This document shows, piece by piece, positions 2,423 to 45,509 of a DNA stretch of 64,000 nt (position 1 is the first letter of the stretch; every line of letters begins with the position of its first letter). The translations under genes and the position numbers were made by a program. The notes beneath the pieces are model-generated. The model was not told the DNA's origin. It ran no database searches and was given only the letters and a program-made list of their open reading frames with translations. The stretch lies in IMG/VR virus record IMGVR_UViG_3300046660_000488, positions 310,001-374,000 of that record; one strand, 5' to 3'.

Positions 2423-2603
2423 GAACCTGCCGTTTGATCTGAACCTGATCCTGTCGAGGTCGCCGCACGACGCCAACGAAGACAACGGCCTCGTGCTGGT
2501 GGTCGGCCCTGACACGCCGCCGCACTCGCATCCGATGGGGCTTCGCGCTCCGGCGTTCATGGCCTTCATCGAAAAGATGATGACCAACCCAACCGTCCAC
2601 TAA
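2415..2603 (+). CDS. small hypothetical protein (62 aa, MFKNLPFDL...)
   Basis: Internal ATG of listed 2166..2603 ORF, overlapping previous stop. Confidence 0.5.
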   Translation: MFKNLPFDLNLILSRSPHDANEDNGLVLVVGPDTPPHSHPMGLRAPAFMAFIEKMMTNPTVH

Positions 2604-3508
2604 GCGACGCGGAACCCGTTGACGGCCTTGTCGTCCCAGAACACGTAGGCGTGGTGCTTGAAACCACCGCCCATGGTGATGCCACCGGCGTACTGAATGC
2701 CGGTGATGCGGTCTGCCTGTAGCAGGCGCCGGAAGAGGGCGTGTGCCTCTTCGTTGTGGATGAACGGGCTGTCCGCGCCGATGCCCGTGTAGACCTCACG
2801 GAACGACGGCAGGTCGCCATCCTCGCGCTCATAGCTCGTCACGAAATTGGCGACGTCACGGGCGGTGGCCCGGTCGTCGAATTTGTTGAGCACGCTGATC
2901 AGATCGTTCAGCACACCTCGGGTGATCGTCGCGTCGGCGATCAGGACCCGACGCAGATATTCATCCGGAACATCGAAGACCGCGAGCCCGGCGTTCGACA
3001 CCGGCATCTTTTTCTGGATGACGGCCGTACCGTCCAGCTTGACGCGGACCTCGTAGGTGCGCGCCAGCTTCTTCCACTGTTCAGCCGCGTACGCCATGCG
3101 CTTGGCTTCCTCAGCCTTGCGGAGATCGTTCGTCACGACTCCCCATTGGCCGCCGTCCGAAAACTCGACGGTGGAAGACCAGTACGCGGTCTCCCGGCTG
3201 TGATCGACACCATTGGCGTCGATCTTGGACGCCAGCATGCGGCAGTATTTCTGGACGACTTCCTGCTTGGTCTTGGCGCTGGTGCGGAAGATCACGTCTC
3301 CCGGTGTGTCCGTGCCCTTGGTCATGTAATCGCCCGCGACGCGGCGGCTGTCGGTCAGGTAGATGCCATGGCCGAACAGACCGTAGAGCGAAGTCTTCTC
3401 CGTCTCGAAACTGTCGATCTTGGCAGAGTCGCCACGATACAGGCGGACATGACCCGGCTTGGGAGCCGGGACCTTGGTGGCTTCGGAGAGAATTTCATTC
3501 GCGCGCAT
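2600..3508 (-). CDS. ADP-ribosyltransferase-like protein, probable virion internal protein
   Basis: LYRG...FGHGIYLTDSRRVAGDY near N-terminus and ITGIQY...YVFW near C-terminus resemble ART-PolyVal-type folds; N-terminus MRANEILSE; late motif 5 nt upstream. Confidence 0.55.
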   Translation of the reverse strand: MRANEILSEATKVPAPKPGHVRLYRGDSAKIDSFETEKTSLYGLFGHGIYLTDSRRVAGDYMTKGTDTPGDVIFRTSAKTKQEVVQKYCRMLASKIDANGVDHSRETAYWSSTVEFSDGGQWGVVTNDLRKAEEAKRMAYAAEQWKKLARTYEVRVKLDGTAVIQKKMPVSNAGLAVFDVPDEYLRRVLIADATITRGVLNDLISVLNKFDDRATARDVANFVTSYEREDGDLPSFREVYTGIGADSPFIHNEEAHALFRRLLQADRITGIQYAGGITMGGGFKHHAYVFWDDKAVNGFRVA

Positions 3509-3513
3509 GGCCT

Positions 3514-3520
3514 TATTTAT
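3514..3520 (-). promoter_or_regulatory. late promoter motif ATAAATA
   Basis: T4-like TATAAATA core; 5 nt before ATG 3508. Confidence 0.65.
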
Positions 3521-3588
3521 GGTTGATTTTCGTTGACCAAAAACTCGCAGCACGCCTATGGTGCAGGCTTCAGTTACCGGATCACGCC

Positions 3589-4152
3589 ATGCCCTCGTTC
3601 ACCGTCATGCACGCTCATCAGAAGGTCAGCGAGAGCGAGGACTACGTGTTTTTCCTCAACGGCCCGTTGAGCCAATGGCACAAGTCCACGTTCCAGCAGC
3701 GGCTGATCTACAACGGCGAACTCTTCACGTTCAGCCACGCCGAGCAGTACATGATGGCGGGCAAGGCTGTCCTGTTCGACGACTACGAAACGCTGGAAGA
3801 CATCCTGAAGGCCAAGACCCCGGACGAGCAGAAGGCGCTCGGCAAGAAAGTCAAGAATTTCAACCAGACCAAGTGGGATTCCAACGCCCGCAAGATCGTC
3901 CTGCGCGGCAATCTGGCCAAGTTCAGCCAGAACGAAGACCTCAAGCACTACCTGCTGTCGTTCGACCGCAACAAGCGCTTCGTCGAGGGCGCGTGGTACG
4001 ATCCGGTCTGGGGCGTCAAGCTGGCGTGGGACAACCCGCTGATCCTCAACCCGGCCAACTGGCAGGGGACGAACTGGCTGGGCGGTGTGCACGACATCGT
4101 CCGCCAAATCCTGATCCATGATCCGTCGCTGGACCTGATGTCGGATGCGTGA
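3589..4152 (+). CDS. NADAR family (YbiA-like) protein
   Basis: AEQYMMAGKAVLFDD, QKALGKKVKNF, FVEG..YDPVWG, GTNWLG motifs; start chosen at MPSFTV. Confidence 0.88.
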   Translation: MPSFTVMHAHQKVSESEDYVFFLNGPLSQWHKSTFQQRLIYNGELFTFSHAEQYMMAGKAVLFDDYETLEDILKAKTPDEQKALGKKVKNFNQTKWDSNARKIVLRGNLAKFSQNEDLKHYLLSFDRNKRFVEGAWYDPVWGVKLAWDNPLILNPANWQGTNWLGGVHDIVRQILIHDPSLDLMSDA

Positions 4153-9125: not shown

Positions 9126-10418
9126 ATGGACATCGAACTGAAATCGGATTTCCTGCGCGTGATGCAGGAGCGTGGCTTCATCCACCAATGCACCAATCTG
9201 GCTGCGTTGGACGAGGTCATGGCTACGGGTCCGATGAAGGCCTACATCGGCTTCGACCTGACGGCTGACAGCCTGCACGTCGGATCGCTGATCCAACTGA
9301 TGGTCCTACGTCACCTGATCTCGACCGGCCACACGCCGGTGATCCTGTTCGGCGGCGCGACCACGCGCATCGGTGATCCGACCGGCAAGGACAGCATGCG
9401 TCCCCAGTTGACGCCCGATCAGATCGAGACGAACGAGGTCGGCATCCTGAAGGTGGTTGACCGCATCGTCGGCCGGTTCGCTCTCGACCAGAAAAAGAAC
9501 GTTCCGACCATCCTCAACAATCTGACGTGGATGCAGCCCAGCAGGACGCTGGACTACCTGCGGGAGTACGGGCCGCACTTCACGATCAACCGCATGCTGA
9601 CGCTCGACAGTGTCAAGACGCGGCTTGAGCGCCAGCAGCCGATGACGTTCCTCGAATTCAACTACATGCTGTTCCAAGCCATCGACTTCCGGTGGCTGAA
9701 CAGCAACTGCGACATCGAGCTTCAGATCGGCGGCTCCGACCAGTGGGGCAACATCGTCAACGGCGTGGACCTGATTCGTCGCATGGACGGTGAGCAGGCG
9801 TACGGCCTGACCACGCCGCTGCTGGCCAACAGTGCTGGCGAGAAAATGGGCAAGACTGCTGGCGGCGCCGTCTGGCTCGACCCGGACAAGACATCGCCGT
9901 TCGATTTCTGGCAATTCTGGTACAACATCGAGGACGGCAAGGTCGCCTCGTTCCTGCGGTTGTTCACGGAGCTTGATCTGCCGACGATCCGCGACATCTG
10001 CGCGCTCGACATCTTGGAGAGCAAGTCGATCCTCGCGACAGAAATCACGTCGGTCGTGCACGGTCACGAAAAGGCGTTGGAAGTCCTCGACACGGTCAAC
10101 AAGGCCAAGCGCGGCGAGCCGGGTGAGGACTTGGTCTTGATCTCGTGCACAACCAGCATCTACAGCGGTGTGCACGGCTACTGCACGTGGGCCGACATGT
10201 TTGCCGAAGACCCGACCGGTGAGCCTAACCTGTCGAAGGGCGAGACCACGCGGCTGGTCGCCAATGGCGGCATCAAGCTCGACGGCGTGAAGCTGACGGA
10301 TGCGCGTGAATTCGTGAAGGACACGGTTCGCAATCGTCACCTTCAGGGCAAGACGGTCCTGCTGACCATCGGCAAGAAGCGCGCCTTCCGCATTTCCTTC
10401 CCGGAGGAACGCACATGA
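9126..10418 (+). CDS. tyrS: tyrosyl-tRNA synthetase
   Basis: YIGFDLTADSLHVGS (HIGH), FNYMLFQAIDF, QIGGSDQWGNI, KMGKT (KMSKS), C-terminal S4-like domain. Confidence 0.95.
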   Translation: MDIELKSDFLRVMQERGFIHQCTNLAALDEVMATGPMKAYIGFDLTADSLHVGSLIQLMVLRHLISTGHTPVILFGGATTRIGDPTGKDSMRPQLTPDQIETNEVGILKVVDRIVGRFALDQKKNVPTILNNLTWMQPSRTLDYLREYGPHFTINRMLTLDSVKTRLERQQPMTFLEFNYMLFQAIDFRWLNSNCDIELQIGGSDQWGNIVNGVDLIRRMDGEQAYGLTTPLLANSAGEKMGKTAGGAVWLDPDKTSPFDFWQFWYNIEDGKVASFLRLFTELDLPTIRDICALDILESKSILATEITSVVHGHEKALEVLDTVNKAKRGEPGEDLVLISCTTSIYSGVHGYCTWADMFAEDPTGEPNLSKGETTRLVANGGIKLDGVKLTDAREFVKDTVRNRHLQGKTVLLTIGKKRAFRISFPEERT

Positions 10419-10564: not shown

Positions 10565-11127
10565 TGATCCGCCAACTCCTGTCTGGATTTTTCGAAACCA
10601 TGGCCGCCATCTTCCGCATCAACGACGGCGACAATGTCGCTGGTCGGAACCTCTTCATCAGCAGCAACCTCGTCATCATCGACGGCGTCGAATATGACAT
10701 GAAGGGCGTCCCTCCGGTGAAGCTGGAGATCGTCAACGGTTCGCTCGACACGCTAAGGGTCTACGGCAACGCCTATGTCGCTGAAGCCGTCACGGTCAAA
10801 ACCGTGGACGCCAGCGGCAACGTCGTCTGCGGACCTGTGACCGGCGACGTGGACGCCAGCGGCGACGTGACCGTGCACGGCAGTGTCGGCGGAAACGTCG
10901 ATTCGTCCAGCGACGTGACGGTCACCGGAAGCGTGGGCGGCTATGTGGACGCCTCGGGTGACGTTCGCTGCGGCGATGTCGGCCAGTACGTCGAATCTTC
11001 CGGCGACGTTGAGGCCGGAGACGTGAACGGCAACATCGACGCCTCGGGTGATGTGACCTGCGGCGGCATCAACGGCAACATCGACGCCTCGGGCGACGTG
11101 ACCGTGAACACCGGCCGTCCGGCATGA
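10564..11127 (+). CDS. beta-solenoid repeat protein (bactofilin-like)
   Basis: Seven 15-16 aa repeats of V/I-x-G-x-V/I-D-A-S-G-D-V. Confidence 0.7.
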   Translation: MIRQLLSGFFETMAAIFRINDGDNVAGRNLFISSNLVIIDGVEYDMKGVPPVKLEIVNGSLDTLRVYGNAYVAEAVTVKTVDASGNVVCGPVTGDVDASGDVTVHGSVGGNVDSSSDVTVTGSVGGYVDASGDVRCGDVGQYVESSGDVEAGDVNGNIDASGDVTCGGINGNIDASGDVTVNTGRPA

Positions 11128-12275
11128 GAATCCTATCCGGCGTCCAGCCCACCGGCAACCTGCACCTTGGCAACTATCTCGGCGCCATCAAGCAGTTCGC
11201 CAAGCTCCAGCAGCCCGGCAACAAGTGCTTCTACAGCGTGGTCGATCTACATGCGATCACCGCTGGCAAGCACGATCCGAACGTGCTGGCCCAGCACACC
11301 CGCGAGATCGCGGCGGCGTACATCGCCTCGGGTGTGGACCCCAACCGCTCGACGATCTTCGTCCAGTCACAGGTTCCGGAAATCGCCGAGCTTCACTGGC
11401 TGCTGTGCAACGTCGCGCGCATGGGCTGGCTGGAACGGATGACGCAGTATCGGGAGAAGACCAACAGCGTCCCTCCCGCTGACCTGCGTGGCATCCTCAG
11501 CCGCGTCGAGAAAGTGCTGAAGGGATCGGGGAGCTACAACCTCGAACCGCTGGAAGGCAATGCCGGGACCGTCTTCAACCACAATGACGTGCTGGCCATG
11601 TACGACATGCTGTCGCGCGTCACCTCCAACAAGGAGGGCGCGAGCGTCGGTCTGTTCACCTATCCGGTGCTGATGGCCGCCGACATCCTGTCGGTCGGCG
11701 CCACGCACGTTCCGGTCGGTCATGACCAACGCCAGCACCTGAACTTGGCTCGCGACATCATCGAGAAGCTGAACACCGACTTCCTGATGGTCCGTGACAT
11801 CCCCGAAGCGCTGCACGTCGCCGAAGGCGCGCGCGTCATGTCGCTGAAGGATGGCACGCGCAAGATGTCCAAGAGCGATGCCGACGACGCTGGCCGGATC
11901 AACATGACCGACAGCGACGAGGTGATCGCCAAGAAGGTCCGCAAGGCGACGGCCGACAGCCTGCCGTTCCCTGAGCACGACGTTGACCTGAAGCCGGAAG
12001 TGGCCAACCTGATCTCGATCTATGCTGGGGTCTCTGGGCTGGCGCGTGAGGCGATCTTCGCCGAATTCGCTGGCAAGGGCTGGGGCGTGTTCAAACCGGC
12101 CCTGACGGACGTCCTGATCACCAACATCGGTCCGATCCGCAACCAGATGGAACGGCTGCTCAAGGACGAAGGCTTCCTCGACTATCTGCTCGGCGAAGGC
12201 GCGATGAAAGCGCGGGAAGAAGCCGCGCGCACCTTGGGCATGACCAAGCACATGATGGGCTTCTACGGTGCTTGA
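11124..12275 (+). CDS. trpS: tryptophanyl-tRNA synthetase
   Basis: MRILSGVQPTGNLHLGNYLG, YPVLMAADIL, VPVGHDQ, KMSKS. Confidence 0.95.
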   Translation: MRILSGVQPTGNLHLGNYLGAIKQFAKLQQPGNKCFYSVVDLHAITAGKHDPNVLAQHTREIAAAYIASGVDPNRSTIFVQSQVPEIAELHWLLCNVARMGWLERMTQYREKTNSVPPADLRGILSRVEKVLKGSGSYNLEPLEGNAGTVFNHNDVLAMYDMLSRVTSNKEGASVGLFTYPVLMAADILSVGATHVPVGHDQRQHLNLARDIIEKLNTDFLMVRDIPEALHVAEGARVMSLKDGTRKMSKSDADDAGRINMTDSDEVIAKKVRKATADSLPFPEHDVDLKPEVANLISIYAGVSGLAREAIFAEFAGKGWGVFKPALTDVLITNIGPIRNQMERLLKDEGFLDYLLGEGAMKAREEAARTLGMTKHMMGFYGA

Positions 12276-12375
12276 TCTGGCCAACCAAATCGCCGGTGTC
12301 AGTGTTGCGGTTATCACCGCCTCACTGGCATCCGGCTTTGCTGGTATTCGTTACATCGCCCGCAACTGGCGTTAG
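12268..12375 (+). CDS. 35 aa single-TM peptide ([35 protein letters not shown])
   Basis: Translated by hand; GTG overlaps trpS end and TAG overlaps prs stop; hydrophobic core then basic tail. Confidence 0.4.
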
Positions 12376-13286
12376 ATACTGAGGCGAGACACCGACTCTT
12401 CGTGAGCCGCCCGGCGGATCGCTTCGCCGAACACGTCAGCCACCGACACCACCCGGATTTTCTTTGGCAGGTCCGCCTGCGGGATCGTGTCGGTGATAAC
12501 CACGGTCTTGATTGGCGAAGCGATGATGCGCTCGCGGGCTGGGCCAGACAGCACCCCGTGGGTGACGTAGGCGCTGACCGAAGCCGCACCCTTGGCGAGA
12601 AGAGCGTCGGCCGCGTGGCAGAGCGTTCCGGCCGTATCGACGATGTCGTCGTACAGGATGCAGTCGAAGCCTTCGACGTCGCCGATGATGTTCATCACCT
12701 CGCTCTCGTTGGCCTTCTCGCGGCGCTTGTCCACGATGGCCATGCCGATGCCGAGCTTTCCGGCCAGACCACGGGCGCGCACGACGCCGCCGACGTCAGG
12801 GGAGACGACGAGCGGGTTCTTGTAGCTGCGCTCGATGTCGCGGGCCAGCGTCGGCATGGCGGCGAGGTTGTCCACCGGGATGTTGAAGAAGCCTTCGATC
12901 TGTCCGGCGTGCAGGTCCATGGTCAGGATGCGCTGGGCGCCCGCCGTGGTCAGGATGTCGGCGACCAGCTTGGCCGAGATCGCCGTGCGACCGCCTTTGC
13001 GATCCTGCCGGGCGTAGCCGAAGTAGGGGATGACGGCAGTGATCCGCTTGGTGCTGGCGCGCTTGAGCGCGTCGATGCAGATCAGAAGCTCCATTAGGTT
13101 GTCGTTGGCTGGATTGCTGGTCGATTGCATGACGTAGACGTCCTGCCCGCGCATGTTCTCGAAGATGCGGACGGAGATTTCCTTGTCGGAGAACGTCTTG
13201 ACCGTGGACTCACACAGACGGATGCCGAGATATTCGGCAACGGTCTCGGCGAAAGCCGGATTGGAATTGCCAGCCAACAGCTTCAT
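12372..13286 (-). CDS. prs: ribose-phosphate pyrophosphokinase (PRPP synthetase)
   Basis: [48 protein letters not shown]. Confidence 0.95.
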
Positions 13287-13353: not shown

Positions 13354-13851
13354 TCAGGATTCGAAGAAGAAATGGTCCGCCAGTTCGAGGAATTTGTCGA
13401 GGGGCAGGAGCCAGTAATCCTTGTAGACGATGATCGGTTCCAACGGGACGCTACCTTTGTCCACGACGACCATTTCCGGCACGTTGTTGAACTTCATAAT
13501 GACGAGGACTTTCTTGTTCGCCTGCTTGGCGTCATGCTCGCACTGCTTGATCCACTCGTCGATGAACGTGCATTTCTGGTTCACCATGGACACGAAGGTC
13601 GGCGGCGTCTTGTAGTGCTTGCACTCGATGGAGAACTTGAAGCCGTCCGGGCAGATGATGTCGCCGAACGTCGCTTTGTCTAGGTCGTGAGTCTGCGTGC
13701 GGCGCGCGTTGCTTCCGCCGAAGAACGATCCTGAGTCTGCATTTCGGCGAAACGATTTCTCGATGCCTGTATGCTTCTCGAAGCGAGAAGAGAACGTGTT
13801 CGAGATTTTACGCTCGAAGGTGTTGCCTTTGTTTTTACCGTTAACGGGCAT
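13354..13851 (-). CDS. Holliday junction resolvase-like PD-(D/E)xK nuclease
   Basis: KGNTFER, GDIICP, IECKHY motifs. Confidence 0.75.
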   Translation of the reverse strand: MPVNGKNKGNTFERKISNTFSSRFEKHTGIEKSFRRNADSGSFFGGSNARRTQTHDLDKATFGDIICPDGFKFSIECKHYKTPPTFVSMVNQKCTFIDEWIKQCEHDAKQANKKVLVIMKFNNVPEMVVVDKGSVPLEPIIVYKDYWLLPLDKFLELADHFFFES

Positions 13852-15183: not shown

Positions 15184-15852
15184 ATGATGGACAAATTTTG
15201 CCATGCGTGCGGCGTCAAGCACGTGGACATTGCCTACCCCAAGACCTGCATGGCTTGCAGCCGGATCACCTATTCCAACCCCAAGCCGGTCGCCGTCGCG
15301 CTAGTCCCGGTCTACGACCGCAAGAACAAGCGCACGGGCATCCTGATCGGTGAACGCGGCATCGAGCCCCAGAAAGGCACGTACGGCCTGCCGGGCGGCT
15401 ACGTGGACGACAAGGACACGAGCTTTGCTGGCGCCGCCGCGCGCGAGGTCTTCGAAGAGACCGGTCTGCGCGTCGATCCCAACGAGCTTGTCCCGTTCCA
15501 TTCCTTCTCGGACGGTCGCAACATCCTCGTCTTCCTGACGATGAGCGAGACGATCTCGTTCGACACGGTGGTGAAGAATTTCGAGCCGTGCGATGAGTGC
15601 CCGGCCGTTCGCGTCGCATGGGAACCGGAAGACCTGTCGTTCTCGTCGCACACCATCGCCATGGAAAAGTGGTTTGACCGCCGGGCGGCCATCGAACGCA
15701 TTCGCGGTGACATCGGTGAAGGTCTTGAGATCACAGGCCTGCAAACGCAGGCCGTCTACGAGGCCATGGAGATCGGCATCAAATCGTTCGTGGACATCGC
15801 GTCTGAACTGCGCGCTCAGGAACGCGAAGACCTCAAATCCACCGCAGTTTGA
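15184..15852 (+). CDS. Nudix hydrolase with N-terminal zinc ribbon
   Basis: CHAC...CMAC, NPKPVA, Nudix box PGGYVD...AAREVFEETG. Confidence 0.9.
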   Translation: MMDKFCHACGVKHVDIAYPKTCMACSRITYSNPKPVAVALVPVYDRKNKRTGILIGERGIEPQKGTYGLPGGYVDDKDTSFAGAAAREVFEETGLRVDPNELVPFHSFSDGRNILVFLTMSETISFDTVVKNFEPCDECPAVRVAWEPEDLSFSSHTIAMEKWFDRRAAIERIRGDIGEGLEITGLQTQAVYEAMEIGIKSFVDIASELRAQEREDLKSTAV

Positions 15853-16180: not shown

Positions 16181-16416
16181 AGGATCGGCAGGTTCGTCTT
16201 CTCGACAAATTTGATTCTGTCTTCTATGTATCGAATGTAACGCTTGCGCTCTTCGTGACTTAGAGACCACGCTTCATCACGAGTGAGACCGCCACGCATG
16301 TGCCAACTCAGCGTAATGACGTGGTCAATCAGTTCCCTCTGTTGAGCGCGAAAGCTCCTGATCAACCGCTGAATATCGTTCGGGTCTGTTAGGCTCAGGA
16401 GCCTTGCTCGAAAAAA
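16177..16416 (-). CDS. gp51-like baseplate/tail assembly chaperone; may be translated as a frameshift extension of the upstream gene
   Basis: LSWHMRGGLTRDEAWSLSHEER...LPIL; no ATG between the upstream stop and the motif. Confidence 0.6.
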   Translation of the reverse strand, partial: FFRARLLSLTDPNDIQRLIRSFRAQQRELIDHVITLSWHMRGGLTRDEAWSLSHEERKRYIRYIEDRIKFVEKTNLPIL

Positions 16417-17522
16417 GTTGACGGGTTGAACTCGATCTCGGTTTCCCATTCGTGCTGGCAAGCCGTGCACGCCACGTGGATAGCCTTGTCGATGCCCTTG
16501 GTGTTGATCTCGCGCAGCTTGGCTTCGAGCTTGGAGGTCATTGACCGGCCGACGTTCTGGATGAAGCGGCCAATGGCCCCACGATCCGTCACGGTGGCTT
16601 CCGGGGTAACCAGCGCCACGATAGCCCCGATCATCGCGTTGGATTGCAGCGACGACAGGCGACGGAACGCGCGGTTACGAGCAGCAGAAATCTGAACCTC
16701 GTCGCCGGATGCTTCCGCGATCTGTAGGGATCGACCTTCCTCGTAGCTGGTCAGCGTGATGGTCGTCACCGTCTCCAGCGTATAGGGCTTGACATAGGCG
16801 GTAAGGCCCGGAGCCAGTTCGACCGGGTTCTGCTGATCTACATAGGTCATCGAGCCCATGACGGACGGCAGGTGGCACTCGAACGTGTGCTCGGCGCCGC
16901 AGGACGGGCAAGCAACCTCGATCTCCATGTTGTCGCCATACGATGCGGCGCGGATGGCCAGCAGCAGGACGTCAAGGTCCGGGCTCGACACGGCGCGCGG
17001 GTTTCGGATCGCCGGGACGCACGACTTCAGAAGTTCCTCGATAGCGTATCCGCTCATCAGGGCGTCGGGGTTCTTCATCAGAAGCTCGTCCTGAGCCCGC
17101 ATCGGGAAGATCGGCACTTCGTGGTTCAGGGCCGGGTTGTAGTCCCGTTGATCGAAGAACGCGCCACGGGTCGGGAGCATCACCGTCAGGCCGGGCACGC
17201 GATAGAAGCGCGCCAGCGGGTCGATGGCCGCCTGTTGAGCCTGATCCAGCGCGGCCAGTGCTTCAGCCGGAGACGTGAAGGGCTGCTCGCCGAACGCTGG
17301 GAACGACGGCGGAGCGCCCATGCCCGGAGGCGGAGCGAACGCTTGGGGCGCGGGCTGCGTGAACTCGGTCCGATGCTGCGGTTGCGGCTGTTGGACCTGT
17401 TGCGGACGCGGCGGCGGGATGTGAGGCGCGGCCGGGCGCTGCATGGCTTGGAACGGATGGGGCGGCGGAAGATCACCGTCACCGTAGTTCTCGTTGAATT
17501 CGTCGTCGGGGAATTGCGTCAT
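16395..17522 (-). CDS. T4 gp26-like baseplate hub assembly protein with Pro/Gln-rich N-terminus
   Basis: LARFYRVP...LPTRG...PIFPMRAQDELLMKNPDALMSG...SCVP; CPSC and CTAC pairs. Confidence 0.75.
   Translation of the reverse strand: MTQFPDDEFNENYGDGDLPPPHPFQAMQRPAAPHIPPPRPQQVQQPQPQHRTEFTQPAPQAFAPPPGMGAPPSFPAFGEQPFTSPAEALAALDQAQQAAIDPLARFYRVPGLTVMLPTRGAFFDQRDYNPALNHEVPIFPMRAQDELLMKNPDALMSGYAIEELLKSCVPAIRNPRAVSSPDLDVLLLAIRAASYGDNMEIEVACPSCGAEHTFECHLPSVMGSMTYVDQQNPVELAPGLTAYVKPYTLETVTTITLTSYEEGRSLQIAEASGDEVQISAARNRAFRRLSSLQSNAMIGAIVALVTPEATVTDRGAIGRFIQNVGRSMTSKLEAKLREINTKGIDKAIHVACTACQHEWETEIEFNPSTFFEQGS
16410..16416 (-). promoter_or_regulatory. candidate -1 frameshift heptamer T TTT TTC
   Basis: In frame in gp26-like gene; AGGCTC-CT-GAGCCT hairpin starts 5 nt downstream. 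Confidence 0.55.
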
Positions 17523-17629: not shown

Positions 17630-20347
17630 ATGAGCGATATTACAGCACGCCAGATGGATGACCTCCTGTCCCAGTTGAAATCAGCAACTGGTGCATTTGG
17701 TAAAGCCGCCGACAAACTCAACGACACTGGGTCGTCGAAGAATGCTGCATCGAAGGCTGCGAAGGAGACGCTTGATCTTGAGGATAAGAAGCAAGGCTTC
17801 ATTTCCAAGAACATTCAGAGCCTGAAGCAGAGCACCCACGCACAAGACACCTTCGCCGAACGCATCGGGAAATCCTCGGGAATCCTCGGGGCTGCTTTGG
17901 GCGAGTTCGTCAATTGGTCCAAGGAAACGGTCTCCACCTACCGCGAAATGGTTCAGGTCGGCCAGACGTTCAACGGCTCGATGCTGGAAATGAGCAAGGC
18001 TGCGGCCGAGAGCGGCATGCCGCTGAAGGAATTCGCGGAAGCCATCAAATCCAACAGCCACGTCGTCGCCCAGCTTGGCGCGAGCGGTAAGTCGGGTAGC
18101 TTCGGCGACCTTCAGAAGAAAATTCGCATCGCCACTGAGAGCGCTGGTCTGTTCGGCCTGTCCGTCCAAGGCCTGACCGCGTTCCAAGGCGACTATCTCG
18201 AAATCCAGCGTCTGTCGAACGATCTCGATACGCGCGCCTCGTCGCGTTACCAGAAGACGATCATCGACTTGGCCAGTTCGGCTGGCGTGATGGCTCAGAT
18301 CACGGGTGAAGCACAGGATCAAATCCGCGAGAAATCAAAGGCTGCTCTAAGCGATTCTCTGGTCACCGCGACGCTGGCCCAAAACGCGCAGCGCGGCATG
18401 GGCGCCTACAACGACGCCCTCCAGAAAGCCGTTGTCGAACTGGCCGCGCAGCCGGGCATCGCCGGTACGATGCTGTCCAAGGGCATGGCCGACACCTTCT
18501 CCCACTTCGGCATGGCCTACATGACCGAAGCCGGTCAGAAATTCATTGAAGCCGGTGTCTCGGGAGCGTCGGACGTTCTGGGTGAAGCGGCGCGCCGCAT
18601 TTCGGCCGGTGAGGACGCCACGACCGTCAACATGCAGATGGTCAGCCAACTGAAGACGATGCTGTCCGATCCGCAGACGCGCGAATCTCTGAAGCTGCAA
18701 GCGGTCGCTGGCAACAAAGCCGCCGAAGAAATCCTCCAGCTTTCTGCTGACCTGAAAACCTATACCAAGGCCGACATCGCCAAGGCGAAGAACGATCAGA
18801 AGAACAAGGACATGATCACGCAGATCAGCCTTGCTGGTAAGAGCGTGTGGGATCGTCTGACTGGCGACTTCCTGACCGGGTTCCTGCAACCGATCACCGA
18901 AATCTTCAACGACCCCAAGGCCGTCGCCGAGTGGAAGACGACGTTCGAGGAGCTTGCCAAGCAGATTGAACCTCTGGGTAAGCAATTCGGTCAATTCGTC
19001 AAGGAAGTCTTCACGCCGGGGATGGTAAAGGACTTGGTGAATGGATTGGTCGCCACCGTCAAAACGGTCAAGGTCATCGGTGATCTTGGCTTCGGCCTGA
19101 CCAAGATCGTCTTTGGCTACACCAATTTCATCAGCAAGATCACCAAGCCGCTCGACGGTCTGCATAAGGGGCTCGGTGGTCTGGCTACGGGCATTGCTCT
19201 GGTCGCCACATGGTTCGCTGGCAAGAAACTGATCGGTGCGATCATGAAGGGCATGGGCCTTGGTGGTGGCAAGACCACGATCAAGGCGACCGTCGCCAAC
19301 ATCTTCGCGAACAAGATCACCGGCGGGCGGCGCGGTCGCGGCGGGCGCGGATCGGGCGCGGCCGGAGCCATGGGCGACGCTGCTGAGGAAGTGCTGGAAG
19401 ACACCGTCGAGGGCGGCGCTGGCAAGATCGGCCGTAAGCGTCGTGGCGTCGGCGGTCTGCTCAAGCGCGCCATGAAGGGTCGTGGAACGAAGGGTCTGAA
19501 GGCGTTCGCAAAGCGCGTTCCGGGCGCTGCATGGGATTTCGCCAAGAAACACCCCAAGGACTTGATCAAGGGAGCCGCGAAGGGCGCGGTTGTCGGCGCC
19601 GTCGTGGGCATCGCCACGGACATGGCCACCGAAGCGGTCTTGGATAAGCTGGGCGTCAAGGGCGACGACAAGAAAGCCGTGTCGGACATCACGAGCGGTG
19701 TGACCGGTGGAGCGTCCATGGGCGCGACCATCGGCTCGATCATTCCCGGCGTCGGAACGCTGGCTGGCGGCATCATCGGTGGCGCGGTCGGCGGCCTGAT
19801 CGGCGTGGCCAAGAACTTCAAGACCGTGAAAAAGTGGGTCGGTGATTTCGCCAAGGGCGCTGGCGACATGTTCAAGAACATGTGGGACTGGATCACCAAG
19901 GCCGAGTGGATGAAGCCGATCCTGACCATGCTGAAATTCAGCCCGGTTGGTCTGGCTTTCATGGGCACGAAGGCGCTCGCCGGAGCCCTCACCAAGCCGA
20001 AGGACTTGCCGGGCGGCACGCTGGGCGATCCTGATGGCGCGTCAGCCCCGCAAGCCAAGGCCGGTATCTTCGACCGCCTCGGCGATTTCTTCAAGCCGAA
20101 GGCTTCGGGCGTCAAGACCCCGCCGCCTCCGTCAGGCACGGGAACATTGGGCGGCGCTGATCGTCTTCGCAACAACCAGCAGTCCGGAAATGGTGGTCAG
20201 AACGTCTCGAACGCTGACCTTCTGAAGGAAATGAAGGCTGGACGAGAGGCGACTGAACGTCAAACGGCCATCATGTCACGCCTGCTGCAACAGTCGAACC
20301 AGTTGTCACAGAAGGGTATTTCGGCTTCGGAAATGAAGGGAATGTAA
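17630..20347 (+). CDS. tail tape measure protein
   Basis: 905 aa, Ala/Gly/Lys-rich helical protein with Gly-rich hydrophobic segments; next to chaperone and portal genes. Confidence 0.75.
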   Translation: MSDITARQMDDLLSQLKSATGAFGKAADKLNDTGSSKNAASKAAKETLDLEDKKQGFISKNIQSLKQSTHAQDTFAERIGKSSGILGAALGEFVNWSKETVSTYREMVQVGQTFNGSMLEMSKAAAESGMPLKEFAEAIKSNSHVVAQLGASGKSGSFGDLQKKIRIATESAGLFGLSVQGLTAFQGDYLEIQRLSNDLDTRASSRYQKTIIDLASSAGVMAQITGEAQDQIREKSKAALSDSLVTATLAQNAQRGMGAYNDALQKAVVELAAQPGIAGTMLSKGMADTFSHFGMAYMTEAGQKFIEAGVSGASDVLGEAARRISAGEDATTVNMQMVSQLKTMLSDPQTRESLKLQAVAGNKAAEEILQLSADLKTYTKADIAKAKNDQKNKDMITQISLAGKSVWDRLTGDFLTGFLQPITEIFNDPKAVAEWKTTFEELAKQIEPLGKQFGQFVKEVFTPGMVKDLVNGLVATVKTVKVIGDLGFGLTKIVFGYTNFISKITKPLDGLHKGLGGLATGIALVATWFAGKKLIGAIMKGMGLGGGKTTIKATVANIFANKITGGRRGRGGRGSGAAGAMGDAAEEVLEDTVEGGAGKIGRKRRGVGGLLKRAMKGRGTKGLKAFAKRVPGAAWDFAKKHPKDLIKGAAKGAVVGAVVGIATDMATEAVLDKLGVKGDDKKAVSDITSGVTGGASMGATIGSIIPGVGTLAGGIIGGAVGGLIGVAKNFKTVKKWVGDFAKGAGDMFKNMWDWITKAEWMKPILTMLKFSPVGLAFMGTKALAGALTKPKDLPGGTLGDPDGASAPQAKAGIFDRLGDFFKPKASGVKTPPPPSGTGTLGGADRLRNNQQSGNGGQNVSNADLLKEMKAGREATERQTAIMSRLLQQSNQLSQKGISASEMKGM

Positions 20348-20393: not shown

Positions 20394-22193
20394 ATGTGGA
20401 CGAAACACTTCCGGAAAGTTGACCGGGCCTCTTATACTTCTGATCAACTTCCTGTACATGCGGGCGACAACTTCAATGGCGCGGCGACAAGCTCGAAATT
20501 TTCGAGCTTCTTGCCGGAGGTCTATGCTGGTCACCCTAACCGCATCCAGCGCTACTACCAATACGCTGAAATGGACCGCGACAGTGACATCGGCGCCGCG
20601 CTGAACACCATCGCCGATTTCTGCACCCAGTCGGAAGAACAGGCCGAAGAGCCGTTCATGATCAAGTTCGACGATGACGCCTCTGAAGCAGAGATCAACG
20701 TCATCAACACGAATCTGAAGGTCTGGGTCAAGATCAACAAGTTCCGTAGCCGTCTGTGGGAGATTTTCCGCAAGACGATCATGAACGGTGACCAATTCTT
20801 CCTGCGCGATCCCGAGACCATGGAATGGCTCTGGGTCGATCACTTCGCCGTGGAAATGGTCGAAGTCGATGACGCCAAGGGCAAGAAGCCGGACAAGTAC
20901 GTGATCCGTGGCCTCGACCTGAACCGTCAGGTCAAGTTCGCCACGCGCTCGGCCGACCCCACCCAGTATCGCAACCCCTTCGGCACGAGCCTCGTGCCCG
21001 GCGCTCGCGCGGCTCCGCCGCCTTCGTCGTCGGCCGGTGGCGCCAATGTGTTCCAGATGGCTGGCGGCGGTCGTGATGCTCGCCAGAACATGGGCGGCCA
21101 ACAGGCCAACGAACTCGTCGTCATCGAAGCCGAGCACATGATCCACCTTTCGCTGTCGGCGGAAATGGACGTCAACTGGCCGTTCGGCCAATCCGTGCTT
21201 GAGCCCATCTTCAAGACCTACAAGCAGAAAGAACTGCTTGAGGACTCGATCATCATCTATCGCGTCCAGCGCGCCCCCGAGCGCCGCATCTTCTACATCG
21301 ACGTTGGCGACATGAACCCGGTCCGGGCGCGTTCCTACGTCGAGCAAGTCAAGACCGACATCCACCAGCGTCGCATCCCCAACCGTACGGGCGGTGGTTC
21401 GTCGGTGATGGATGCCGCCTACAACCCCATGGGCGTTCTGGACGATTACTTCTTCGCCCAGTCTGCCAATGGTCGCGGCTCGAAGGTCGAAACCCTGCCC
21501 GGTGGTGAACTGGTTGGTGAGATCGGCGACTTGACCTACTTCACCAAGAAGCTGGCCCGTGGTCTGCAAATCCCGACGAGCTACATGTCCTTCGGCGACG
21601 ACAGCCAGCAGGCGACGTTCAATGACGGACGTCTTGGCCAAGCAGTCATCGAAGAATTCAAGTTCAACAAGTACTGCATGCGTCTTCAAGGTCTGCTTTC
21701 GCCGACTTTCGACACTGACTTCAAGTTCTTCCTGAAGAACAACGGCGTCAAGGAAGACCTGTTCGGCATCTTTGAACTCCGTTTTAACCCCCCGCAAAAC
21801 TTCACTAAATATCGCCAGATCGAACTCGACTCTGCACAAGTCGCTGTTTACCAGCAAATCGCCGACAACAAGAAGTTGTCGGAGCGTTTCAAGATGAAGC
21901 GTTACCTCGGAATGACTGACGAGGAGATTTTGGAAAACGAGCGCATGTGGAAGGAAGAGAACCCGACGAAGGTCAAGAAGGTGCAAGGCGCCACTTCGGC
22001 CGAGTCGGAGCCGGAAGGCGATCTGGCATCGGTTGGCCTGCGTATGCCCGGAGACGATGGCATGGGCGATCTCGGCGACGAAACGATGCCTGACGACATG
22101 AACGCAGATGGGGCCATGGCTCCAGACGCAGGCGCCGGGGCTCCGCCTCCTCCAGCCGGTGGTGACGCCGGTGGCGGCGGTCCTCCGCTCTAA
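20394..22193 (+). CDS. portal protein (T4 gp20-like)
   Basis: LLEDSIIIYRVQRAPERRIFYIDVG, DDYFF, GSKVETLPGG. Confidence 0.95.
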   Translation: MWTKHFRKVDRASYTSDQLPVHAGDNFNGAATSSKFSSFLPEVYAGHPNRIQRYYQYAEMDRDSDIGAALNTIADFCTQSEEQAEEPFMIKFDDDASEAEINVINTNLKVWVKINKFRSRLWEIFRKTIMNGDQFFLRDPETMEWLWVDHFAVEMVEVDDAKGKKPDKYVIRGLDLNRQVKFATRSADPTQYRNPFGTSLVPGARAAPPPSSSAGGANVFQMAGGGRDARQNMGGQQANELVVIEAEHMIHLSLSAEMDVNWPFGQSVLEPIFKTYKQKELLEDSIIIYRVQRAPERRIFYIDVGDMNPVRARSYVEQVKTDIHQRRIPNRTGGGSSVMDAAYNPMGVLDDYFFAQSANGRGSKVETLPGGELVGEIGDLTYFTKKLARGLQIPTSYMSFGDDSQQATFNDGRLGQAVIEEFKFNKYCMRLQGLLSPTFDTDFKFFLKNNGVKEDLFGIFELRFNPPQNFTKYRQIELDSAQVAVYQQIADNKKLSERFKMKRYLGMTDEEILENERMWKEENPTKVKKVQGATSAESEPEGDLASVGLRMPGDDGMGDLGDETMPDDMNADGAMAPDAGAGAPPPPAGGDAGGGGPPL

Positions 22194-22205: not shown

Positions 22206-22451
22206 ATGAGAATTGACGAATTCGTAGATCAGAGAGACTTGGAAACGGCCATCTATGAACCGGCCGAAGACGAGTACAACAAGCGCCATCTGGACGACAC
22301 GCGCAAGCCCGTCCTGACGCTGGCGACGTTGAACCGCCTCAAGCGCATGCGCGCTCTGCGGAAGCTCGAAGCGCTGAAGCGCGAAGACCTGATCGCCGTG
22401 ATGTACGCAGCCCCGTCCGACGCGGGCGGCGGTGGCCTTCCCGGTTTCTAA
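22206..22451 (+). CDS. head-module hypothetical protein
   Basis: DDTRKPVLTLATLNRLKRMR; GAGG RBS; directly after portal. Confidence 0.7.
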   Translation: MRIDEFVDQRDLETAIYEPAEDEYNKRHLDDTRKPVLTLATLNRLKRMRALRKLEALKREDLIAVMYAAPSDAGGGGLPGF

Positions 22452-24740: not shown

Positions 24741-25988
24741 ATGGATAAAACTCTCGCCAGCATTCTTGGGGCATCCGGTCTCTCTACGGAGATCGTTGAA
24801 AGCCTTCAAGAAGCCTTCGACAAGAAGGTGGCAGAGGCCCGCGCGGAAGCTGAACTGGCGATGCGCGAAGAGTTCGCTCGTCGTTATGAACACGACAAGT
24901 CTGCTCTGGTCGAAGCCATGGACCGTATGCTCACCACGGAAGTGGGAAAGTTTGCGGACCAGAACGCGGCACAGTTTGCCCAGTTCAATGAAGCACGGGA
25001 TGCGTTCCGTGCCGCAGTGAACGAAAGCCGCACCCACTACCAAAAGAAGCTCCGTGAGCACCTGTCCATGACGAAGCAATTCGCCAAGGAACAACTCATG
25101 AAGGAAGCGATGTCTTATCGCGCCGCCAAGAAGTCGCTTGCAGAAGCAAAGGCCTCGGCCCGCGCTGAACTGACCGCCTTCAAGGAAGCTGCTGTCAAGA
25201 CCCAAGCTGCTCGCATGAAGAAGATCGACGAATTCGTTGTCGCACAAGTCGGCAAGGAACTGCGTGAATTCTCTGAAGACCACCGCGCTCTGGTTGAAAC
25301 CCGCGTTAAGCTGGTTACCGAAGGTCGCAAGCGTCTGAAGGAAACTCGCGACGCCTTCATCAAGCAATCGGCCACCAAGGTCGAGCAGATGGTTACGGAA
25401 TCGCTGAAGAGCGAAATGAAGCAACTGCACGAAGACTTGGAGCGTAACCGTCAGAACACGTTCGGTCGCCGTATCTTCGAAGCCGTCGCCGCCGAATACA
25501 TGGCCTCGTATCTCGCCGAAGGCACTGAAGTCAAGAAGCTTCAGAGCATGCTCGAAGGCCAGACTGCCGAACTGAGCGAAGTCAAGACCAAGCTCGATGA
25601 AGCACAAAAGGGCGCCGACCAAATCCGTCGCAAAGCACATCTGGCCGAAAGCCGTGCCGAGCGTAGTCGAGTCATGGCCGAACTTCTCTCTCCTCTTCGT
25701 GGAGAGAAGCGCGTGGTCATGGAAGGCATGCTGGAGACTGTCAAAACCGACAACCTCCGTACTGCTTTCAAGAAACTTCTCCCGGTTGTCATGACTGAAA
25801 GCCGTCGTCCAGCAGCACAGGCCCCGGCCGGTGCACGGAAGCTGATGGAGAACCCCCAAACGCCTACGCGCGCCGTCACTGGCGACCGCGCTAACCGCAC
25901 GCTCTTCGAATCGTCGCAAGCCGAAATCGAAAGCGAAATTGATCTTGAACTCGCGAAAGTCGTCCGACTCGCCGGTATCCAGAAGTAA
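24741..25988 (+). CDS. prohead scaffolding protein (T4 gp22-like)
   Basis: Long coiled coil between protease and capsid genes; AAGGAG RBS; C-terminus VRLAGIQK. Confidence 0.8.
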   Translation: MDKTLASILGASGLSTEIVESLQEAFDKKVAEARAEAELAMREEFARRYEHDKSALVEAMDRMLTTEVGKFADQNAAQFAQFNEARDAFRAAVNESRTHYQKKLREHLSMTKQFAKEQLMKEAMSYRAAKKSLAEAKASARAELTAFKEAAVKTQAARMKKIDEFVVAQVGKELREFSEDHRALVETRVKLVTEGRKRLKETRDAFIKQSATKVEQMVTESLKSEMKQLHEDLERNRQNTFGRRIFEAVAAEYMASYLAEGTEVKKLQSMLEGQTAELSEVKTKLDEAQKGADQIRRKAHLAESRAERSRVMAELLSPLRGEKRVVMEGMLETVKTDNLRTAFKKLLPVVMTESRRPAAQAPAGARKLMENPQTPTRAVTGDRANRTLFESSQAEIESEIDLELAKVVRLAGIQK

Positions 25989-26003: not shown

Positions 26004-27215
26004 ATGAACAAGTTTGAAGGACAGTGGCAAGCCACTAAGAAGGCCCTTTGCGAAGGCGCCGACCTCAAGAAGAACGCTGACGGTACTGCGAACAAGACCA
26101 AGCAGCGCATGATGGAAACCATTCTCGACAACACCCGTCGTGAACTGAAGCTGCTGGAATCGGCCACCGCCGGTGCCACCAACGCCGCCTCCATCGCCAC
26201 CCTGAACAAGGTCATCATGCCGGTCATCCGCCGCGTCATGCCGACCGTGATCGCCAACGAAATCATCGGCATTCAGCCGATGACGGGTCCGGTCGCCCAA
26301 ATCCACACGCTGCGCGTTCGCTACGCCGACACGGTCCCGACCGCTGGCGGTGGTGTTACCGCCGGTAACGAAGCTCTGGGTCCGTTCGACATCGCTCGCT
26401 TCTACAGCGGTAACGAAAACCCGGCTAACCCGCGTGCGGCCTCGACGCCGTCGCTGGAAGGTCGCGCTGGCAACCGCCTGTCGATCCAAATCCTGAAGGA
26501 AGTCGTCGAAGCCAAGACCCGCAAGCTGTCGGCTCGCTGGACCTTCGAAGCTGCTCAGGACGCCCAAGCTCAGCAGGGCATCGACATCGAAGCCGAAATC
26601 ATGGCCGCTCTGGCTCAGGAAATCACGGCCGAAATCGACCAAGAAATCCTGTTCAGCCTGCGCGCCCTGCCGGGTACGCCGGGTTCGATCTTCAAGCAAG
26701 ACGACGTGACGGGCACGCCGACCTTCGTGGGCGACGTCCACGCTGCTCTGGCCATCCTGATCAACCGTCAGTCCAACCTGATCGCTCAGCGCACGCGCCG
26801 TGGTTCGGGTAACTGGGTTGTCGTTTCGCCGACCGCTCTGACGATCCTGCAATCGGCCACCACGTCGGCGTTCGCTCGCACGACGGAAGGCGTTTTCGAA
26901 GCTCCGACCAACACCAAGTACGTTGGTACGCTGAACAACTCGCTGAAGGTCTACGTTGACCAGTACGCCAACGATGCGACCCCGGTCCTCATCGGCTACA
27001 AGGGCAACGAAATGGACGCCGCCGCGTTCTACTGCCCCTACGTTCCGCTGACCTCGTCGGGCGTGATCATCGATCCGCAGACCTTCGAGCCGGTCGTTTC
27101 GTTCATGACCCGCTACGGCTACCTCGAACTGACGAACTCCGCTTCGTCGCTCGGCAACGCCGCTGACTATCTGGGTCTGGTCGGCATCGACACCGGTTCG
27201 CTGACCTTCATCTAA
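26004..27215 (+). CDS. major capsid protein (T4 gp23-like)
   Basis: IGIQPMTGP, AKTRKLSARWTFEAAQD, AEIDQEI, FYCPYVPL, MTRYG. Confidence 0.96.
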   Translation: MNKFEGQWQATKKALCEGADLKKNADGTANKTKQRMMETILDNTRRELKLLESATAGATNAASIATLNKVIMPVIRRVMPTVIANEIIGIQPMTGPVAQIHTLRVRYADTVPTAGGGVTAGNEALGPFDIARFYSGNENPANPRAASTPSLEGRAGNRLSIQILKEVVEAKTRKLSARWTFEAAQDAQAQQGIDIEAEIMAALAQEITAEIDQEILFSLRALPGTPGSIFKQDDVTGTPTFVGDVHAALAILINRQSNLIAQRTRRGSGNWVVVSPTALTILQSATTSAFARTTEGVFEAPTNTKYVGTLNNSLKVYVDQYANDATPVLIGYKGNEMDAAAFYCPYVPLTSSGVIIDPQTFEPVVSFMTRYGYLELTNSASSLGNAADYLGLVGIDTGSLTFI

Positions 27216-42833: not shown

Positions 42834-42840
42834 TATTTAT
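42834..42840 (-). promoter_or_regulatory. late promoter motif ATAAATA
   Basis: 4 nt before ATG 42829. Confidence 0.65.
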
Positions 42841-44531: not shown

Positions 44532-45509
44532 ATGATCCGGGCGATCATCGTTGACATGGACGGGACGCTCGCGAACGTGAAGCACCGTCTGCATTATCTG
44601 AGCCGCTTGCCCAAGGGCATGTCGAGCTTCGAGACCTACCATGGCCTGATCGACCAGCCCAAGGACTGGACGAGCTTCCATGACGCCTGCGTGGACGACA
44701 CGCCCATCGAAGCGGTGGCGTGGCTGGTCACGGCCCTGTTCGCCACCACGAGCCTGTCGAGTGGCAAGTACGCCATCGTCATCGTCTCGGCGCGCCATGA
44801 GCCCTATCGCGAGCGGACCGAAGCGTGGCTGGCCAAATTCGGCATCCCCCACGACCGCCTGTATATGCGGACGGACGAGGACACGCGACCGGACCACGAG
44901 ATCAAGGCGGACATCCTCGCCCAGATGATGGACGACGGATACGAGCCGTGGCTGGCCATCGACGACCGGCCGGAGGTCTGCGACATGTGGGAGAGCTTCG
45001 GGATCGCGGTCCTGCGGTGCTCCTACGAGGACGTACAGGCCAAGTACGCTGGCAAGGTGATGGTGACCCTGCTCGTCGGCCCGTCCGGCGCCGGGAAGTC
45101 CACCTACGCCAAGAAGCACTTCAAGCCGGGCGAGATCATCGAAACCGACGCCATCCGTGAAGCGGAAGGTTTGGGTCATGATCCGGACGCGCTGGCTCTG
45201 ACCTTCAAGCTGGCGCGCGGCTATGCCAAGGCGCGGCTTGATGCTGGCCTGCCGGTGGTCATCGACGCGACCAACCTTCGCAAGAAGGATCGCGCCCATT
45301 TCACCCGGCTCGTCCCGACCGGCGCGTTGATCAAGTACGTCCTGATCGACCGCAACTACGAGGACAAGGTCGAGACCAAGGGCGACCGGCTCGCCGACAT
45401 CGTGGACCGGCATCACCGGTATTTCCGCGACACGACGATGAAGGACATGAAGCTGGCCGATGGGCTGGGCAACGTCATCGTCGAAGACAAGCGTATCGGT
45501 CGCCGCTAA
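44532..45509 (+). CDS. polynucleotide 3'-phosphatase/5'-kinase (PseT-like, phosphatase first)
   Basis: N-terminal HAD DMDGT, IDDRPEV; C-terminal P-loop GPSGAGKST and IDATN. Confidence 0.88.
   Translation: MIRAIIVDMDGTLANVKHRLHYLSRLPKGMSSFETYHGLIDQPKDWTSFHDACVDDTPIEAVAWLVTALFATTSLSSGKYAIVIVSARHEPYRERTEAWLAKFGIPHDRLYMRTDEDTRPDHEIKADILAQMMDDGYEPWLAIDDRPEVCDMWESFGIAVLRCSYEDVQAKYAGKVMVTLLVGPSGAGKSTYAKKHFKPGEIIETDAIREAEGLGHDPDALALTFKLARGYAKARLDAGLPVVIDATNLRKKDRAHFTRLVPTGALIKYVLIDRNYEDKVETKGDRLADIVDRHHRYFRDTTMKDMKLADGLGNVIVEDKRIGRR

Follow-up and report, generated by a model that had tools for sequence, protein, structure and literature searches.

In bacteriophage T4 the first 10 residues of the internal protein (IP) IPIII suffice for encapsidation and are then removed, and the prohead protease gp21 cleaves after the Glu of the sequence L/I-x-E (PMC9026906). 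The T4 protein Alt, which has an ADP-ribosyltransferase (ART) fold, is a substrate of the prohead protease that is packaged in the head and injected (PMC9026906, PMC5512222), and belongs to the R-S-E Alt/VIP2 clade (PMC5512222). In the ART-PolyVal family (PF18760) the active site is composed of H on strand 1, Y on strand 2 and D on strand 5 (PMC5512222). This study concerns a window of 64,000 nucleotides (nt), representing bases 310,001-374,000 of IMG/VR virus record IMGVR_UViG_3300046660_000488, and within it the gene P0001, whose product combines an ART fold with an N-terminal leader resembling the T4 capsid-targeting sequence (CTS).

The source is a single metagenome-derived contig of 578,292 bp with 59% guanine plus cytosine (GC), which IMG/VR rates as a complete viral genome bearing direct terminal repeats. 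A search of sequencing runs matched DNA runs only and pointed to a rhizosphere metagenome as its probable origin. Coordinates marked G000 refer to this whole genome, all others to the window; the 789 genes called in it come from our own simple open reading frame (ORF) caller, so gene counts are approximate. We consider it more likely than not that P0001 encodes an internal head protein expressed late by a huge T4-like phage, in which a leader like the T4 CTS is attached to a packaged and ejected cargo with an ART fold. The features of the gene are as follows.

2600-3508, minus strand: P0001, ART-fold protein of 302 amino acids (ATG 3508-3506; stop 2600-2602 included)
3514-3521, minus strand: CATAAATA, resembling a late promoter, with TAAATA at 3514-3519; 5 nt separate it from the ATG downstream
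3506-3508, minus strand: ATG start codon, also the transcription start (+1 at ~3508) predicted from T4 geometry
3482-3508, minus strand: leader MRANEILSE (residues 1-9), predicted cleavage after E9
3452-3481, minus strand: Pro-rich linker ATKVPAPKPG (residues 10-19), variable in the alignment
3278-3451, minus strand: N-terminal half of the ART core (residues 20-77), strands 1-3, from hhalign and Pfam
2714-3277, minus strand: insert of ~190 amino acids (residues 78-265), a helical and beta sub-domain, from the secondary structure of the model
2603-2713, minus strand: C-terminal half of the ART core (residues 266-302), with the GIQYAG strand, the GGITMGGG loop and H285-x-A-Y-V-F-W-D

The N-terminal leader and the late-promoter-like motif

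Residues 1-10 of P0001 read MRANEILSE-A, exactly as the original prediction had described them, and thus form a leader of about 10 residues that ends in L/I-x-E. In the T4 record, IPII and IPIII begin with MKTYQEFIAE/A and IPI with MKTFKEF...ITE/A, where the slash marks cleavage. When aligned from the cleavage site, EFIAE/A of T4 stands opposite EILSE/A of P0001, and L-S-E/A fits the specificity of gp21. The proposal of a T4-like leader is supported by this alignment and by the gp21-type protease encoded in the genome (see below). In the AlphaFold2 model of P0001 residues 1-10 appear as a low-confidence helix detached from the rest of the protein.

The pattern ^MR.{3,6}[ILMVF].E was found at the start of 34 of the 789 called proteins (4.3%), compared with 0.37% of internal Met positions. 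These leaders are 8-10 residues long; E occupies P1 in all of them, 30 of the 34 have L or I at P3, and P1' is chiefly S, A, D or T. According to Pfam, the proteins that carry them include ART-PolyVal proteins (five above the Pfam cut-off, with scores of 32-85 bits, and three weak), three GNAT acetyltransferases, a SprT-like metalloprotease, a cell-wall hydrolase, and Acb1 (7e-37; G000 137774-138298), a phosphodiesterase acting against the cyclic-oligonucleotide-based antiphage signalling system (CBASS). In each of them the leader is situated N-terminal to the Pfam domain model, while many other leader proteins have no Pfam match. A six-frame search of the genome revealed eight ART-PolyVal-like ORFs, all eight of which possess the leader (P ~5e-12). 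With the exception of Acb1, the cargo domain types match the injected polyvalent-protein repertoire of Iyer et al. (PMC5512222). Genes with the leader are spread over the whole genome, with clusters at ~32-45 kb, 107-138 kb, 462-486 kb and 548-568 kb (G000). These data suggest that the leader is a portable protein-level tag on at least 34 proteins, and that many separate enzymes may be packed into the head and delivered by injection along with the DNA. In the literature searched, a leader family of this kind was not described.

The leader, LYRGD and GxGIYLT are kept across the 16 full-length homologues of P0001, which show 38-57% identity, and relatives' contigs of 51-63% GC retain both the leader and the arrangement TAAATA-N4-5-start. 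Among 163 relatives of P0001, at least 38 have the leader, 65 start directly at the ART core and 22 lie inside long proteins. At one relative locus, genes for an S77 protease and a Gp23 capsid protein are located 1.4 kb from the homologue. Relatives outside this phage group lack the leader; among the 65 that start at the core, ORF168 of Ralstonia phage RP13 begins with MSELILYRGD. The relative P0018 starts with MKTFAEFVVVE, which resembles the T4 IP leaders (MKTYQEFIAE, MKTFKEF) more closely than the MR-type leader does, and thereby links the MKT-type and MR-type leaders.

The genome and the leader set share several features with T4 IPI, IPII and IPIII, namely the short leader whose terminal (L/I)-x-E precedes A or S, a promoter motif of the T4 late type, genes for a gp21-type protease and a gp22/gp23-type head module, and a constant tag in front of diverse cargo that evolves fast (PMC3012670, PMC9026906). 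The differences are that the T4 leaders start with MKT and those of this genome with MR, and that the T4 tag occurs on a handful of proteins, whereas here it precedes cargo of enzyme size (ART, GNAT, protease, hydrolase, Acb1) on at least 34. In T4 ipI, ipII and ipIII, AGGA/AGGAAA resembling a Shine-Dalgarno sequence stands a few nt before the ATG, while here only 4-6 nt separate the promoter motif from the ATG and a Shine-Dalgarno sequence does not fit between them.

The late motif that had been noted 5 nt ahead of the P0001 ATG was found in place: on the minus strand CATAAATA (3521-3514) is followed by the spacer AGGCC (3513-3509) and the ATG (3508-3506). The T4 late motif TATAAATA spans positions -13 to -6, and the late promoters of the T4-like phage Aeh1, CTAAATA, span -12 to -6 (PMC1524935); the P0001 motif matches those of Aeh1. 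With the last A of the motif at -6 and a spacer of 5 nt, +1 would fall on the A of the ATG. A GTG at 3553 was considered as an upstream start and rejected, since it would extend the coding sequence over the promoter motif, and the homologues begin with MR.

TAAATA occurs 180 times on the two strands of the 578-kb genome. An ATG follows it at an offset of 4, 5 or 6 nt in 15, 40 and 8 cases, respectively, against 2.7 expected per offset, so that (C/A)TAAATA with an ATG 4-6 nt on is found 63 times genome-wide against ~8 expected, with a mode of 5 nt. The base preceding TAAATA is C or A, and a -35 element is not visible upstream. In the window such TAAATA-ATG arrangements are present at 3514-3519 (minus strand), at 42834-42839 (minus strand) and just upstream of 47880 (plus strand). 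All 52 motif-preceded genes among the calls start with ATG. The motif lies upstream of the genes for the prohead protease, the scaffold and an 897-residue virion protein, and 4-6 nt ahead of those for a baseplate-wedge subunit, a tail-fibre-like protein and a virion structural protein. Its position before protease, scaffold, baseplate-wedge and virion-protein genes points to late timing of P0001 as well. A gp55-type late sigma factor is encoded just upstream of the window.

G000 301326-302186: gp55-type late sigma factor (phrog_12791, E 1.7e-80)

This sigma factor consists of 286 amino acids and is longer than T4 gp55, whose gene has 558 nt in the T4 record. By analogy with T4, the modal spacing between motif and ATG predicts dozens of leaderless late mRNAs, which, if true, would be new for T4-type phages. 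The leader is often coupled with the motif, which occurs 2-9 nt from the start, mainly at 4-6 nt, in 22 of the 34 leader genes (Fisher P ~3e-20). The remaining 12 have no adjacent motif, and several of these are internal to operons, only a few nt from the upstream gene or overlapping it; the signal is therefore a property of the protein and not a side effect of the promoter.

A gp21-type protease is encoded together with a T4-type scaffold and capsid module.

17654-20347, plus strand: virion protein of 897 amino acids, with ATAAATA 27 nt ahead of the start
20394-22193, plus strand: T4-type portal (Portal_T4, 331 bits)
22206-22451, plus strand: protein of 81 amino acids
22742-23743, plus strand: acidic core-like protein of 333 amino acids
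23863-24501, plus strand: gp21-type prohead protease, Peptidase_S77 (Pfam 86.8 bits; phrog_207, 2.6e-57)
24741-25988, plus strand: scaffold (scaffold PHROG matches)
26004-27215, plus strand: gp23-type major capsid protein (Pfam Gp23, 313 bits)

The order of the head module, comprising portal, two small proteins, protease, scaffold and capsid, matches that of T4 genes 20-67-68-21-22-23. The capsid protein contains a putative L-x-E maturation site, KLLE52/S53, just ahead of the region covered by the Gp23 model, and the KLLE/S site was also found in one relative. The two small head-module proteins begin with MRIDEF and MRSILE, resembling the leader. The PHROG matches of the protein of 897 amino acids, whose gene immediately precedes that of the portal, are to virion structural proteins and tail-associated lysins.

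ART fold, domain layout and relatives

The AlphaFold2 model of P0001, obtained from an alignment of 75 sequences, has a mean predicted local distance difference test (pLDDT) value of 93. In this model the insert divides the ART fold of P0001, an atypical member of the ART-PolyVal superfamily. The ART-like core LYRG...GHGIYLT, recognised earlier from the sequence, occupies residues 23-26 and 46-52: strand 1 is LYRGD, containing R25, and strand 2 is GHGIYLT, containing Y50. The helix after strand 2 bears A58, Y61 and K64. Fold matches cover both sides of the insert, and shorter relatives of ~270 amino acids align to P0001 in two separate stretches, which suggests that they lack part of it.

The structure prediction and profile search that had been proposed as a check thus recovered an ART fold, through the model, VIA-align and the BFVD and AFDB neighbours, with a weak Pfam match to ART-PolyVal. 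Pfam gave weak ART-PolyVal and DUF3990 matches at residues 22-73; the ART-PolyVal score of 18.3 bits is under the gathering cut-off of 31.2, and only profile positions 8-54 were matched. When the N-terminal half was compared with the canonical ART-PolyVal paralogues by hhalign, the probability was 90%. A sequence-profile search of PDB returned only a weak PARP16 motif match (E 0.65), and a PHROGs search with P0001 gave nothing meaningful.

Among solved structures the fold was visible only via VIA-align; Foldseek against PDB gave nothing at E <= 0.001. The best VIA-align match was residues 1418-1600 of 9k3a chain B (Z 12.1, 162 residues, root-mean-square deviation 3.6, 14% identity), which belongs to the pre-ejectosome of cyanophage A4 and whose numbering fits gp27 (PMC12002296). 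The next matches, with Z of 4.6-7.8, were to diphtheria toxin, ParT, tankyrase, RES toxins, PARP1-4, RhsP2, Arr, AcrIF11, Tpt1 and DarT, and about 30 of the top 50 solved-structure matches were ARTs (Z 4.5-12). The neighbours in BFVD and AFDB are named ART-PolyVal-like, polyvalent-protein-associated, RES and DUF3990. The A4 protein is an ejection protein located inside the capsid, the place proposed for P0001; it differs in its size of >1,700 residues, its podovirus origin and the lack of a leader, and its domain is not called ART-like in PMC12002296.

P0001 resembles ART-PolyVal in the fold, in the alignment of the N-terminal half and in the predicted role of a virion-delivered effector. P0001 is, however, a stand-alone protein with a cleavable-looking leader and not part of a giant one; relative to ART-PolyVal it also has the insert of ~190 amino acids and the GGxxMGGGxxH loop, Arg in place of His, and no conserved strand-5 Asp. 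A polyvalent or virion-delivered context, as in ART-PolyVal, is seen in the long-protein homologues and in the pre-ejectosome match. The original prediction described P0001 as an Alt-like ejected effector on a different ART scaffold. The idea holds as an analogy, in which the common element is the concept of a packaged ART, with the packaging of P0001 proposed by comparison, and the scaffold is indeed not that of Alt. Specific similarity to the R-S-E Alt/VIP2 clade was not recovered, as neither Pfam nor the fold search yielded any Alt or VIP2-type match. The relationship of P0001 to T4 Alt is one of analogy and not of homology, and its fold sides with ART-PolyVal and the H-Y-type ARTs.

The 16 full-length homologues, on contigs of up to 562 kb, came from a search of 5.8 billion proteins, and an exhaustive HMMER search found 243 relatives of P0001. 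Against isolated phages, tblastn gave one distant match, ORF168 of RP13 (26% identity), surrounded by small hypothetical genes, and megablast of the region gave zero matches. Homologous domains are also present inside proteins of 1,226-3,696 amino acids. The P0001-type ART variant is joined in the relative P0020 to an N-terminal region that is GNAT-like and in P0022 to one that is nucleotidyltransferase-like, these regions having been assigned by reading the sequences. In another group of relatives (among P0026, P0028, P0030 and P0032) the variant is flanked by repeated C-H-x-P-x-G-x-P-x-G-G-x-F-C motifs, which look like polyvalent-protein domain boundaries.

Proposed mechanism and alternative explanations

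According to the favoured reading, a gp55-type late promoter, (C)ATAAATA, beside the ATG would cause the P0001 mRNA to start at or next to the AUG. The sequence MRANEILSE would act like the T4 CTS and bring the protein into the prohead scaffolding core, after which the gp21-type S77 protease would cleave it after L-S-E. The mature residues 10-302 would remain in the head with the DNA and be ejected into the host at infection, where the protein would most likely bind nicotinamide adenine dinucleotide (NAD+) and ADP-ribosylate or otherwise modify a host target before expression of any phage gene. P0001 would be one of at least 34 similarly tagged proteins, the cargo of which is largely the repertoire that other phages fuse into polyvalent proteins. 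Should the leader indeed target proteins to the capsid, this phage and its relatives would deliver with their DNA a cargo of enzymes that is unusually large and diverse, one short sequence rule would allow the injected proteome of uncultured huge phages to be read from sequence, and polyvalent fusion and CTS tagging would represent alternative delivery routes for the same effector domains.

A broader version of this idea can be offered tentatively. A clade of huge T4-like phages from soil and rhizosphere may have 'unbundled' the polyvalent strategy into dozens of separate CTS-tagged enzymes, translated from leaderless late mRNAs and co-injected. P0001 would then be a variant of the ART fold that combines R-Y, a Gly-rich loop and a large insert, lacks the catalytic acid and has an undescribed chemistry or target, maybe nucleic-acid bases, with the adjacent NADAR undoing their modification.

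Catalysis by P0001 is plausible in view of its conserved pocket. Over the 75 relatives the near-invariant polar residues are R25, D27, Y50, T52, Y61, K64, Y273 and H285, with Y50 invariant, and conservation of at least 90% was found for G270, Y273, G275, G276, G281, H285, A287 and W291; the loop GGxxMGGGxxH is conserved as well. Canonical paralogues in the same genome, of which the ORF at G000 44585-45253 is one, have YHGT, GFYFT and GYDGV at the corresponding positions of the H-Y-D site, which is incomplete in the P0001 family. The R-S-E site of Alt/VIP2 is incomplete too: R25 is present, strand 2 has Y-L-T in place of S-x-S, and the strand-5 ExE was not found.

Several observations weigh against the favoured reading. 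Packaging, cleavage and ejection are proposed by analogy with T4 from a metagenome-derived genome, and some of the tagged cargo, such as Acb1, is to our knowledge not known as packaged in T4. Strand 1 of P0001 is Y-R-G-D, in which R25 replaces the His, with R in 73 of the 75 sequences. Residue 269, which aligns with the ART-PolyVal Asp (x in GYxGI), is V, T, K, I, H or L and never acidic; the strand-5 assignment is based on a weak profile alignment and the order of secondary structure, the hhalign comparison of the C-terminal halves with the canonical paralogues having placed GYxGI against GYDGV with a probability of just 2.7%. Such an atypical site makes the predicted enzyme activity uncertain. 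This ART variant without the canonical His or catalytic acid is a candidate either for a new ADP-ribosylation chemistry or for a pseudo-enzyme.

An unlikely alternative is that the leader is not a packaging signal, that the tagged proteins are late cytoplasmic ones and that the ART-like protein acts in the producing cell; MR...(L/I)xE could then serve the translation of leaderless mRNAs or co-regulation, or mark the boundary of a recombination cassette. The motif lies 2-9 nt from the start in 22 of the 34 leader genes, so that the N-terminal codons are coupled to the start of transcription and translation; Acb1 and SprT-like proteases are normally cytoplasmic, and packaging itself is something that we infer. 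However, 12 leader genes have no adjacent motif and several of these are operon-internal, while many motif-preceded genes, structural ones included, have no leader. Moreover, the invariant Glu with L/I two residues earlier fits the specificity of the encoded protease family (PMC9026906), and the tag is strongly enriched on domains found elsewhere in injected polyvalent proteins (PMC5512222). A still weaker case can be made for a packaged protein that is not an enzyme, being either a degenerate ART fold with NAD+, ADP-ribose or a host factor as its ligand, or simply an internal or ejection protein associated with DNA, as in the case of the matching cyanophage A4 domain. Both triads, H-Y-D and R-S-E, are incomplete and no strand-5 acid is conserved, and the best structural match is to the DNA-contacting structural layer of the pre-ejectosome (PMC12002296). 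In contrast, the near-invariance of pocket-like polar residues over 75 diverse relatives is typical of a ligand-binding or active site. Some ART-fold enzymes, such as those of the PARP10 and PARP16 types, act without a catalytic acid, which also counts against this alternative.

The last alternative concerns the gene next to P0001, which encodes a NADAR-domain protein.

3589-4152, plus strand: NADAR-domain protein, ADP-ribosyl-glycohydrolase family (Pfam NADAR, E 1.8e-38)
3533-3562: sigma-70-like promoter site TTGACC-18-TATGGT, ahead of the NADAR gene

This gene, the sole NADAR of the 578-kb genome, is arranged head-to-head with P0001 at a distance of 80 bp. NADARs reverse guanine ADP-ribosylation (PMC11543638, PMC11125620), and T4-like phages bear orphan NADARs (AdfN) that counter host DarTG1 (PMC11825919). 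The neighbour could act against DarTG1 as AdfN does, or it could be a partner of the ART. In the latter case the two genes would form a module in which the ART modifies nucleic-acid bases in the manner of DarT1 or pierisin and NADAR reverses the modification, protecting phage DNA or the producing cell. The proximity of the only NADAR and the reaction known for NADARs favour such a module; adjacency to one of the eight ART-like genes would arise by chance in ~2% of cases, a post hoc estimate. In DarT1-NADAR toxin-antitoxin systems an ART-fold gene likewise stands beside a NADAR gene. Nevertheless, in five of five relatives' loci examined no NADAR was found beside the homologue, and the linkage that defines a DarT-NADAR pair is thus missing there. 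The counter-defence role of an orphan NADAR against DarTG1 is alone sufficient to explain the neighbour (PMC11825919), and P0001 shows no specific similarity to DarT (Z 4.6-4.7). The two genes are divergent and the NADAR promoter appears to be of an early, sigma-70-like type; because the promoter types differ, ART and NADAR would be expressed at different times. A functional pairing of the two is a minor possibility, and the base-modifying module as a whole seems very improbable.

Neighbouring genes

P0001 is a lone minus-strand gene amid a run of plus-strand genes. Its stop codon overlaps that of the convergent gene at 2415-2603 (overlap 2600-2603), leaving no intergenic room for a terminator. 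Because of this overlap, late transcripts of P0001 and early or middle transcripts of the convergent gene would be mutually antisense at 2600-2603. Other genes identified in this part of the window are listed below.

9126-10418 and 11124-12275, plus strand: aminoacyl-tRNA synthetases (tRNA-synt_1b)
12372-13286, minus strand: ribose-phosphate pyrophosphokinase (Prs)
13354-13851, minus strand: phage PDDEXK endonuclease
15184-15852, plus strand: NUDIX hydrolase
16395-17522, minus strand: T4-type baseplate protein

A tRNA scan of the window found zero tRNA genes. The two aminoacyl-tRNA synthetases, located near each other, are class I enzymes of the Trp/Tyr family (E ~1e-64 each). The presence of Prs and a NUDIX hydrolase close to the ART gene may hint at nucleotide or NAD-related metabolism.

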